Positions 8,878-32,495 of a stretch of 64,000 bases of DNA are shown one piece after another. Where the stretch lies: the sequence record PP456877.1, one strand, 5' to 3'. A program made the position numbers and the translations under genes. The number at the start of each line of letters is the position of its first letter. Positions within the stretch are counted from its first letter, which is position 1. The notes under the pieces are model-generated. The model made no database searches. It was not told the DNA's origin and was given only the letters and a program-made list of their open reading frames with translations.

Positions 8878-9023
8878 TAGAATTTCCTGTTAAGAAATGA
8901 ATAGACAATCCCTACCCGAAGGGAGGGGCCTTATATCGTTACTTGCTGTGAAGATTTTTCTCGCGTACAGCGTCTGTTAACTGACGTGGCGGGTTGAGTT
9001 GATCTGACAGGAGCTTCCGGAGG

Positions 9024-24838: not shown

Positions 24839-26779
24839 ATGAATAAAATGCTAAACTTCCTAAACCGTACGCTATATAGCGGTACTGAAAAAGTATCTTC
24901 AAAAGCTACACCAAGTCTAGAACACTTTAAAACAAATGTTGAACAAGTAGATAAAAAGATTCTACAACCCTTTAGTACTAAATTTAAAACCATTCTAAAA
25001 GAATGTTACAGTAATGAGGAGTGGGTTGAAGAACAATCATTTATTGAAGAACCTATTGATCTTGGTTCAGCTGCACGCGGTCTTACCGAGCGCGGTATTA
25101 TGCGTGGTGATTGGGGACGCTTAGCGCATTCCACTATTAAAGAAGCAGAAGGTATGATGCGTACTTATAGTGGTCGTCTAAATGAAGATATGGAGGCATC
25201 TGAAATTAATGAAGTAATTCAAGATATGCCTTATAACTTCACAGCTGGCTCAGCTAATACTAGCCGTTTAGAAGAAGATGACTCTATTTTTGTTGAAGCA
25301 GATACAACTGTAGTTGAACCTCTGTCTAAGCAGACTCTGCCAAAAGTAGCAGAGCTTACTAATCAATTAGTGGAAGTCTATAACCGAATTACTGAAGAAT
25401 TTACAGAAACTGGTATTGCTAAAGTTGAACAAGTTGAACAGCCAGCAGTTCTTGTAGCACTTGGTGAGATCATTAGTAGTTTTAATAAACTAATTGATTT
25501 ATCTTGCGGTGCTCTACCAGTGGAAGAAACTGTTATTGTAGAGGAGGATCCGTTACCTGCCATTGTCACTGGTCCAACTACTGAACCCATTGATGGTGAA
25601 ATTCTACCGGTTGATGCTATTAATAATTCTGCGGCATTAGAAGAATTCATTGAAGAAGTATTAAGTACTAATCCAGAATTCATTAAATATCAAAGTATGA
25701 ATGATAGTAATATTGATTCATATCTAACTGGGGATGACTGGATTATACTGAAATTCAAAGATGGTTCTTATTATTTATACAATGCCCAAAGTGCCGGTGA
25801 AACGAATATAGAAATCATGAAAGATATGGCCGAAACTGGTAGTGGTCTTAATGGTTTTATAAATCGGGTTATTCGTGGCGGGTATGTAGAGAAGTCCATC
25901 ATTAATACTCCCGGTTTTATACAAGTCTCAAATGAAGGTCTTATCGATTCAATCAAAAAAGTTCTTGGCATTTCTAATCGAGGTGATCAGAAACGTATCT
26001 GGCGTTCATCGTCCAGTGCAAGAGGATTTCTGGAACAACTAGAATCTACATTTGGCAATCCACAATGGCTTAATAAGCAGGTATTCGTTACTGGCGATAT
26101 CAATAGTAATGGTATAGCTAACGTACTGAGTATTAATGGTAAAGTCAGTATCGAGGATGCCATTCGTGCAGTAGAACCATTCTTCAAACTCGAAGAAAAG
26201 TCTAATCGCGAAATGGAGTCTTACAGGCAGAAGACTAAACCTGCATTGGATCTACTCATTAAGAATGCACATAACCTAGACGCTAACGTATACAAAGAAG
26301 CAAAGGCTATCGTAGACAAGGCACGTGCTGGATTCAAGACTAGTGTTAAATGGCCTGCCGGTACTATTACAGGTAAGGGTACCTATAATTCACCTCGCAC
26401 CGTGGTCGCGAAATATCCATCTACTGATAGTAAACTCAAAGCTCTTACTGAAGAAGAAGCAGCTAAGGCCATGAACTTAATTATATCGGCATTGGAACGT
26501 CAGATAACTCTTAGCTTCAAGTTCCCTGATTTACCAGATCCACTGGAAGGACTAATCTACGATATGTTGGATAACCCTAGTCCAATAGCTGGTATCGATT
26601 ACTATGATTGGAATGATTTGTTATTCGCATGCTTTGGCCCTGGGATTGATGATGATGTGATGGAAGTTAATAAAATGCGGCAATACCACTCATTCATTGA
26701 TATCATGGAGGCCGCCGCAAAATGGGTAGATCGGTCTATAAAAGGTAGGTTAGCAATGGGTAATGAAAACTACCAGTAA
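24839..26779 (+). CDS. Virion head protein (phiKZ gp303-like) with acidic propeptide and KTSC-like domain
   Basis: 646 aa; acidic N-half; SNEGL motif; IILKFKDGSYYLY...GSGLNGFINR. Confidence 0.65.
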   Translation: MNKMLNFLNRTLYSGTEKVSSKATPSLEHFKTNVEQVDKKILQPFSTKFKTILKECYSNEEWVEEQSFIEEPIDLGSAARGLTERGIMRGDWGRLAHSTIKEAEGMMRTYSGRLNEDMEASEINEVIQDMPYNFTAGSANTSRLEEDDSIFVEADTTVVEPLSKQTLPKVAELTNQLVEVYNRITEEFTETGIAKVEQVEQPAVLVALGEIISSFNKLIDLSCGALPVEETVIVEEDPLPAIVTGPTTEPIDGEILPVDAINNSAALEEFIEEVLSTNPEFIKYQSMNDSNIDSYLTGDDWIILKFKDGSYYLYNAQSAGETNIEIMKDMAETGSGLNGFINRVIRGGYVEKSIINTPGFIQVSNEGLIDSIKKVLGISNRGDQKRIWRSSSSARGFLEQLESTFGNPQWLNKQVFVTGDINSNGIANVLSINGKVSIEDAIRAVEPFFKLEEKSNREMESYRQKTKPALDLLIKNAHNLDANVYKEAKAIVDKARAGFKTSVKWPAGTITGKGTYNSPRTVVAKYPSTDSKLKALTEEEAAKAMNLIISALERQITLSFKFPDLPDPLEGLIYDMLDNPSPIAGIDYYDWNDLLFACFGPGIDDDVMEVNKMRQYHSFIDIMEAAAKWVDRSIKGRLAMGNENYQ

Positions 26780-26794
26780 TGTATCTAATATTAT

Positions 26795-26935
26795 GTAGAA
26801 ATAATCCCTCCCCCTTGTTTCTACATTAGTCATAATAGATCGGAGCCAGTCCCCCTTCCAACTGGCTCCCAGAGAGTAAAACTCTTTGCTGGGCATTAAT
26901 GACGATATATCGCCTCCCTTCGGGGAGGCTTTATA
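26795..26935 (+). ncRNA. Candidate sRNA with two C-rich loops
   Basis: TATGTA start, three hairpins, UUCG terminator, no ORF. Confidence 0.6.
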
Positions 26936-26992
26936 TTTTGTTTTTACGTATGTATATTAAAATATGTATAAACAACATAGAGTAATTATAAA

Positions 26993-27445
26993 ATGATCAA
27001 AAATGAACTTTTACCAGGGCTAATCTATGCCCAAAAAGAATTTGATAAAATTGCAGCTAATGTAAAAGACTATGATAAGTATAAAAGACGCGAAGCTGGT
27101 AGGGCAAGTGCCGTTTTAAGAAGTCTAGTGAGCAATATTGTAAATCAGAATAAACCATCCTCACTTGAACATGAAGGCAAAGTTAGTACTACTAATACTA
27201 ATGAATATTTAGAAGAAGTTAATAATTACTTCTTTAACATTAATAATATTAAATTAATTTCTCCTAAACTCATAAAAGAGAAATTAACAATTGATCTAAT
27301 GAATATTTATGTTAAATGGAATATGATTGGAGTGGCTGGCCGAAATGATGTTCCAATTATTGAACACAGAATTAATGATTGGTGCGAAGTGACCGATGTC
27401 TACATTAATGGTAATAAGATAACTTCTTTACAATGGCCACGTTGA
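26993..27445 (+). CDS. Hypothetical protein
   Basis: ORF track. Confidence 0.7.
   Translation: MIKNELLPGLIYAQKEFDKIAANVKDYDKYKRREAGRASAVLRSLVSNIVNQNKPSSLEHEGKVSTTNTNEYLEEVNNYFFNINNIKLISPKLIKEKLTIDLMNIYVKWNMIGVAGRNDVPIIEHRINDWCEVTDVYINGNKITSLQWPR

Positions 27446-29127: not shown

Positions 29128-29203
<76 letters not shown>

Positions 29204-32419: not shown

Positions 32420-32495
<76 letters not shown>

Follow-up and report, generated by a model that had tools for sequence, protein, structure and literature searches.

An independently transcribed, structured late small RNA with an invariant pyrimidine-rich loop in phiKZ-like jumbo phages

Chromosomal small RNAs of Firmicutes such as RNAIII and RsaE (RoxS) of Staphylococcus aureus and LhrC of Listeria carry UCCC or CCCC motifs in their loops, and C-rich-loop sRNAs of this class pair with G-rich ribosome-binding sites without the need for long seeds. 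The phage RNA described here resembles them in having several unpaired C-rich motifs in hairpin loops that are complementary to G-rich ribosome-binding sites and are conserved among relatives, but it differs from them in that its gene belongs to a virulent phage infecting a Gram-negative host, and RNAIII, RsaE and LhrC have no sequence or Rfam relationship to it. The alphaproteobacterial ar14/'cuckoo' CcsR RNAs (Rfam RF02344) likewise consist of two hairpins with CCUCC-type loops, and ar14 provides the best Rfam alignment of the phage RNA, at 19.7 bits (E = 0.16), which falls well short of the gathering score of 58.8. As ar14 comes from a different taxon, and homologues of the phage RNA in other genera give no ar14 match, the likeness is one of analogy, not of family membership.

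Abundant structured RNAs are also found beside phage tRNA genes, the species 1 and 2 RNAs of T4 among them. Similarly, ncRNA2 of PAK_P3, in the tRNA region, and the sRNA of 201phi2-1, upstream of a tRNA, are structured and abundant RNAs of roughly 100-200 nt situated next to tRNA genes. We detected no sequence similarity between any of these and the phiKZ RNA, and the PAK_P3 RNAs, unlike the phiKZ RNA, lack a transcription start site (TSS) of their own and are derived by processing.

The closest described system is phiKZ TU237, which is the same molecule as the RNA examined here and was reported without a function, an analysis of its structure, a loop motif or relatives from other genera (Putzeys et al. 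2024; PMC10914365). The small RNA is thus not new as a transcript, and we found no functional study of it in the literature, including work that has appeared since Putzeys et al. (2024). The molecule itself was already a published candidate; novelty appears to lie in the family to which it belongs, in the structure, in the invariant loop and in the independence from the gene PHIKZ302.

The 141-nt late transcript and its locus

The window analyzed here is a 64,000-nucleotide stretch of sequence record PP456877.1, and its source is a phiKZ-type Pseudomonas phage. In blastn searches, the 801 bases around the RNA matched Pseudomonas phage vB_Pae3705-KEN49 with 100% identity at the same coordinates and the minus strand of phiKZ (NC_004629) with 99.9% identity; from the phiKZ match, phiKZ coordinates are obtained as 300944 minus the window position. 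On the window's + strand, the RNA is preceded by PHIKZ303 (24839..26779), which is annotated as a virion structural protein and whose mRNA also ends at the terminator T131, and is followed by PHIKZ302 (26993..27445), which encodes 150 amino acids and lies outside the RNA. A cluster of seven tRNA genes is located downstream. Within the tRNA region, tRNA-Asn(GUU) is present in two identical copies 3.3 kb apart (29128-29203 and 32420-32495).

The preliminary description had proposed a discrete transcript of about 140 nt at 26795-26935, and a non-coding transcript of this kind, which has a promoter and a terminator to itself, is indeed on record. Putzeys et al. (2024, microLife, PMC10914365) mapped a 141-nt RNA by ONT-cappable-seq and confirmed it by northern blot with probe JVO-21409, on which it is abundant; their Figure 6B presents a 141-nt intergenic transcript located upstream of PHIKZ302 with its 3' end at T131. 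The supplement of that paper lists the transcript as TU237 (TSS 274148(-), termination site (TTS) 274007(-)), running from late promoter P144 to T131 with no gene inside. After coordinate conversion, TU237 spans 26796..26937 on the + strand, within two bases of both ends first proposed from the window, and the sequences that the supplement gives for promoter and terminator equal the window's + strand, with the same coordinates, strand and length.

P144, a late promoter of the non-virion RNA polymerase type, occupies 26776..26795 (+) according to the supplementary table, and a TATG at 26792-26795 adjoins the TU237 start site. The late (non-virion) RNA polymerase starts at TATG, and the RNA therefore begins flush with a stable 5' hairpin. 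The block TATGTAATGWTATGTAGA upstream of the RNA is kept in Pawinskivirus and in PhiPA3, consistent with a conserved late promoter. At the other end, T131 agrees in sequence with the phage-wide terminator consensus and also terminates the PHIKZ304-303 transcript (TU238; PMC10914365). Most transcripts end at this standard phage terminator, which gives rise to the abundant 141-nt species. A second late promoter, P143 (26948..26967, +; TSS 273977(-), window 26967), drives PHIKZ302 and the tRNA cluster (TU229-232) independently of the small RNA, and read-through units TU233-236 extend into PHIKZ302 and the tRNAs (PMC10914365). Putzeys et al. (PMC10914365) classed the RNA as a 5'UTR-derived ncRNA with conditional termination, a label that comes from the neighboring PHIKZ302, and proposed only 'a regulatory function' for it. 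Earlier dRNA-seq and Grad-seq data from 10 min did not detect the 141-nt RNA, as would be expected because its promoter is late.

Two features of the published and genomic sequence at this locus deserve mention in their own right. In Table S7 of Putzeys et al. (bioRxiv 10.1101/2023.10.13.562163 supplement), the ncRNA is printed as the + strand of the phiKZ record, the reverse complement of the transcript, and the printed sequence starts with aataataagcctcccc; the loops are thus G-rich instead of C-rich, and the fold energy given (-48.7) belongs to the wrong strand. The C-rich loops may have been overlooked earlier because this table prints the complementary strand. In addition, another late start (ATATGT, TSS 26967) lies less than 30 nt beyond the terminator tail TTTATATTTTG (26930-26967), and the consensus of the phage terminators finishes with TTAT(G), which resembles the late-promoter core TATG.

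The gp184-gp304 arm of phiKZ was found to be non-essential on PAO1 in a transposon study, which proposed anti-defence functions for the arm; the failure of an orf302::Tn mutant on strain Env201 led its authors to propose that gp302 inhibits defence (PMC12676376). Since the RNA lies within this arm, it sits in an accessory, host-interaction neighborhood, leaving room for a decoy or counter-defence role.

Mosaic boundaries are found on both sides of the RNA (26300-26781 and 26993-27445). In most Phikzvirus genomes no alignment is possible over the final ~140 residues of gp303, homology restarts exactly at 26781, and gp303 and gp302 both look fast-evolving. Beside the unalignable 3' end of gp303 the RNA is still 96-98% identical within Phikzvirus, and in the T2P/U5 group (T2P/U1B/U5) the gp302 protein is 68% identical whereas the RNA is 99% identical.

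Fold and relatives in three genera

Bases 26795-26937 of the + strand have a minimum free energy (MFE) of -55.8 kcal/mol (z = -5.85), and none of 200 shuffles was equally stable; the opposite strand folds less stably, and a terminator with a U-rich tail is present on the + strand only. The hairpins, closing helix and UUCG terminator listed in the preliminary description all occur at that place on the + strand and in the MFE fold, with one correction. Hairpin 1, at the 5' extremity (26795..26824), had been drawn with too short a stem and a 14-nt loop and is better represented by a 10-bp stem (26795-26804/26815-26824) carrying the 10-nt loop UCCCUCCCCC (26805-26814), as the MFE structure and covariation both support the two extra A-U pairs. 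A GUCAU/AUGAC helix (26829-33/26899-903) closes a multibranch domain (26829..26903) around hairpins 2 and 3. Hairpin 2 (26842..26869) has a 9-bp stem and reads GGAGCCAGU-CCCCCUUCCA-ACUGGCUCC, with its loop CCCCCUUCCA at 26851-26860, and hairpin 3 (26870..26888) reads CAGAGAGU-AAA-ACUCUUUG in the MFE fold. According to the terminator scan and the published TTS, T131, including an AU-helix extension and the U-rich tail, spans 26904..26939; its stem-loop, GCCUCCC-UUCG-GGGAGGC (26912-26929), is followed by UUUAUAUUUU. In the phiKZ-type ensemble, the loops of hairpins 1 and 2 have an unpaired probability of 1.0.

The body of the RNA matched 47 Phikzvirus records by blastn, at 92-100% identity and with one copy per genome, and the same search returned no matches beyond these records. 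Members in Pawinskivirus and Miltoncavirus were found through synteny behind homologues of gp303: an unannotated syntenic spacer homologous to the RNA is present in Pawinskivirus phages PS119XW, PA1C, HPP-Temi and phiHQ and in Miltoncavirus PhiPA3, with PS119XW matching a Phikzvirus member at E = 1e-9 (blastn). In all three genera the RNA is single-copy and lies between the gp303 homologue and the tRNA cluster, whether or not gp302 is present. With a covariance model of nine sequences, the members scored 132-165 bits and nothing else in 1.05 Mb exceeded 27 bits, the weak matches being mostly phage terminators. The sequence searched included the complete KEN49 genome, 80 unrelated viral contigs and, from 201phi2-1 and Phabio, the syntenic loci. 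Neither inspection by eye nor the covariance model revealed a homologue in the syntenic spacers of 201phi2-1 and Phabio.

The gene that follows the RNA is not constant among these phages: Phikzvirus has gp302 at this place, Pawinskivirus has tRNA-Leu immediately next to the RNA, and PhiPA3 has two other small genes, including gp374. A protein anchor search of IMG/VR and phage genomes found PHIKZ302 to be restricted to Phikzvirus, so the published tie of TU237 to PHIKZ302 fails in the other genera, and this variation of the downstream gene shows that the RNA is not an appendage of PHIKZ302.

Searches further afield were largely negative. A strict two-loop pattern gave no matches in metagenomes, and a loose two-loop DNA pattern gave about 120 chance matches in IMG/VR, which are uninformative. 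A hairpin-2 pattern matched PA7 and PhiPA3 only in IMG/VR, gave a single chance match, within a GC-rich coding region, in JGI metagenomes and was absent from 185,579 bacterial and archaeal genomes, the last result arguing that hairpin 2 is without a host-encoded counterpart. Rfam searches with the window and the homologues, at gathering and permissive thresholds (E up to 10), returned tRNAs and chance-level matches only, with no match to a riboswitch family.

In a model-guided alignment of nine distinct sequences, 97.8% of pair cells hold standard pairs. Compensatory changes on both sides were seen in seven pairs, distributed over three hairpins, as compared with 3.7 +/- 1.1 in column shuffles (2 of 500 as high) and 0-3 pairs in slid controls, and the covariation score was 0.252 vs 0.148 for shuffles. 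An independent MAFFT/RNAalifold run found eight compensatory pairs. This support is moderate, since there are only nine distinct sequences, in three clusters. Compensatory changes affect four of the nine modelled pairs of hairpin 1, whose top pair changes from A-U to G-C within Phikzvirus; the loop-closing pair of hairpin 2 occurs as U-A, U-G or C-G and the next pair as G-C, A-U or C-G, with seven of its nine pairs invariant in sequence; and one pair of hairpin 3 occurs as A-U, G-C and U-A. In Pawinskivirus the closing helix differs in sequence (ACCACAG/CUGUUGUGGU), and comparison of three phages shows two compensatory changes in it.

Sequence comparison identifies hairpin 2 as the most conserved element. 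Its loop octamer CCCUUCCA is invariant in all nine distinct sequences, accounting for eight of the ten loop columns, as against two of 17 columns in the linker and four of 66 in the segment before the terminator, the least conserved part. That the loops would not vary freely among relatives was therefore borne out for loop 2, over three genera and with compensatory changes in its stem. Loop 1 varies in length and sequence and keeps a CUCC core (UCCCUCCCCC; UCACUCCU in Pawinskivirus; CCUACUCCU in PhiPA3). The heptamer CCCCCUU, to which the preliminary description drew attention in both loops, is indeed common to the two in Phikzvirus, but it is not kept in the other genera.

Pawinskivirus members carry additional motifs of this kind. 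Loop 1 there reads GUCACUCCUC, and an insert of ~50 nt between the multibranch domain and the terminator (L135:4681-4730 in PS119XW, and the same place in L138-L140) contains two CU-rich motifs, in CCCCUCCUUUC and UCUUUCUCCUUG, one of them being CCUCCUU, the exact anti-Shine-Dalgarno (SD) core; PhiPA3 retains the second insert motif only, as UUCUCCUUG. The number of C/U-rich, anti-SD-like motifs (CUCC, CCCUUCCA, CCUCCUU) thus ranges from two in phiKZ to as many as four in Pawinskivirus. These motifs are mostly unpaired, with an unpaired probability of 0.99-1.0 for the two apical loops and 0.44-0.71 for the extra motifs. All of them are complementary to sequences of the GGAG/AAGGAG/GGAAGG type, and several are similar to the tail of 16S rRNA.

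C-rich tracts and possible pairing partners

Across both strands of the whole 280-kb genome there are 21 pyrimidine 9-mers with at least seven C, of which 19 are arms of terminator hairpins and the remaining two are the loops of this RNA, 36 nt apart; the C-rich loops are not a chance feature. The intrinsic terminators of the phage have near-identical arms, CCYCCC...GGGRGG, followed by YTTAT, in a genome of 37% GC. They are found, for example, at window positions 8920, 16896, 23094, 24768, 28084, 38877, 58764 and 62426, and they cover all other C-rich tracts.

With the antisense of the locus itself excepted, the strongest complements of both loops genome-wide are the G-rich 3' arms of phage terminators, which are SD-like and held in tight hairpins. 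Antitermination in trans through these arms was considered and rejected, as the cis 5' arm, 4 nt away, would win. Pairing with the phage's own tRNAs is predicted to be modest only, and stems would have to open.

Among 314 long phage ORFs, the words enriched at ribosome-binding sites (AGGA, AAGGA, GAGG, AGGAG) are short and A-rich, with GGGG present at 1.9% of sites, GGAGG at 1.3% and GGGGG at none, and the predicted pairing of phage SD sequences with the 16S tail averages -5.6 kcal/mol. Duplex energies between the loops and phage ribosome-binding-site windows average -5 kcal/mol, and ~1% reach -12 kcal/mol or lower, as in intragenic controls. We found no convincing phage mRNA target either by searching for loop complements or from these energies. 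The best phage site belongs to a thymidylate-kinase-like gene (KEN49 genome position 101504 (-), L009:37504), whose ribosome-binding site GAUGAGGGAUUAGUAAUG holds a perfect 8-nt complement of loop 1 (AAUCCCUC; -15.9 kcal/mol), within chance expectation.

Given the weak pairing of the loops with phage ribosome-binding sites, the translation starts of the phage itself are predicted to be spared in phiKZ. This agrees in part with the proposal that the RNA spares phage genes with A-rich starts, as phiKZ sites are A-rich and pair weakly; however, the CCUCCUU and CUCCUU motifs of the relatives fit the AAGGAG-type SD sequences that the phages use, which weakens the argument. Sparing of phage starts is, moreover, no evidence for host targeting.

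Readings of the function

Taken at its core, the RNA is an independently transcribed, structured, late small non-coding RNA of Pseudomonas aeruginosa phiKZ-like jumbo phages, and we put the probability that it is a functional structured ncRNA at roughly 85%. More tentatively, and at somewhat less than even odds, we favor an action in trans, in which the RNA pairs through its loops with purine-rich RNA. The C/U-rich motifs would then be the working surface, carried on a scaffold of covarying stems, and would base-pair with purine-rich GGAG/GGAAGG-type stretches of other RNAs. The G-C-rich pairing of the loops would not need a long seed, and pairing at a ribosome-binding site would block translation. 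Hfq is probably not needed, since the 3' tail is UUUAUAU and not a U-run.

Which RNAs might be bound in this way is suggested by the energies given above. Given that phage ribosome-binding sites match poorly, the partner is more likely to be found among host RNAs or in a small set of phage RNAs, although the finding that phage sites do no better than intragenic controls also counts against trans pairing itself, as does the locking of the best phage complements, the terminator 3' arms, in hairpins. The repression of host mRNAs envisaged in the preliminary description fits poorly with a late promoter, which argues against a role in host shut-off. Conservation of the hairpin 2 stem in sequence fits recognition by a protein as well as base-pairing, and the RNA may alternatively act as a decoy. 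As read-through transcripts exist, trans pairing may also be accompanied by a secondary effect in cis.

Action in cis as the main role, which we consider unlikely, would make the structure and T131 a leader or attenuator that sets read-through from P144 and PHIKZ304-303 into the tRNAs and gp302, with the short RNA merely an aborted product. The classification as 5'UTR-derived with conditional termination and the read-through units TU233-236 (PMC10914365) speak for this, as does the presence of a tRNA-Leu gene downstream in all three genera, 37 nt past the terminator in Pawinskivirus. Several observations are difficult to reconcile with it, though. The segment adjacent to the terminator, where an antiterminator would be expected, is the least conserved of the RNA, and inspection and folding revealed no conserved alternative pairing with the 5' arm of the terminator. 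In phiKZ the separate late promoter P143 lies 30 nt beyond the terminator, the first downstream gene is not constant among genera, and no riboswitch family was matched. The apical loop bases are, furthermore, the most conserved positions, which is unusual for an attenuator.

We give a similarly low weight to a protein-binding role, in which the loops would imitate the 3' end of 16S rRNA (GAUCACCUCCUUA) and titrate its recognizer or another pyrimidine-binding protein. Candidates for such a protein are a host defence factor or toxin nuclease directed at the anti-SD, the GTPase Era, which acts in 30S maturation, ribosomal protein S1 and a phage RNA-binding protein. Loop 1 of Pawinskivirus and the single-stranded insert with its exact anti-SD core are in line with such mimicry, as are the retention of the hairpin 2 stem in sequence as well as pairing and the location of the RNA in a non-essential region of proposed anti-defence function, next to a proposed defence inhibitor (PMC12676376). 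The case is built purely on resemblance, however, and loop 1 of phiKZ is a poorer mimic of 16S rRNA than that of Pawinskivirus.

A more specific and distinctly less probable version of this idea is that the RNA is a counter-defence or translation-reprogramming device that mimics the anti-SD tail of 16S rRNA and is housed in the accessory arm beside the tRNA genes. If so, the RNA could draw away a host factor or toxin that binds the 16S rRNA 3' end or attacks it; alternatively, strong SD sites would be masked globally and late phage mRNAs with weak SD sequences would win ribosomes.

It is improbable, to a slightly greater degree still, that the RNA has no dedicated function and is transcriptional noise from the 3' UTR and terminator of PHIKZ303 preceded by a fortuitous TATG. 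The sharing of T131 with the PHIKZ304-303 transcript and the brevity of the TATG promoter core would allow it, and the region is dispensable on PAO1, judging by the neighboring genes (PMC12676376). Noise would not be expected, however, to show nucleotide conservation over three genera next to flanking genes that diverge or give way to others, compensatory changes in three hairpins together with an invariant loop, a conserved upstream promoter block and abundance on northern blots.

Finally, the antisense ORF KEN49_CDS0045 (26750-26896, - strand; 48-aa hypothetical protein), although annotated in several records and 40-48 aa long in all Phikzvirus variants, is almost certainly a false gene call, as it is absent from the Pawinskivirus and PhiPA3 homologues, its 3' end enters the non-homologous part of gp303, substitutions track RNA pairing instead of codons, the mapped TSS and TTS, like the polarity of the terminator, belong to the + strand, and the entries covered from the supplement of Putzeys et al. 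include no minus-strand transcript at the locus. Small + strand ORFs were discarded together with it, there being no conserved ORF on either strand among the homologues.

These comparisons correct two annotations, in that the RNA is independent of PHIKZ302 and the strand printed in the published table is the wrong one. Phage therapy work makes use of phiKZ and its relatives. To our knowledge, a function is established for very few small RNAs of virulent phages and for none in nucleus-forming jumbo phages. With a candidate working surface that is clear and mutable, published abundance and comparative support from three genera, the RNA described here is one of the better-defined candidates for a late regulatory RNA role in a lytic jumbo phage.
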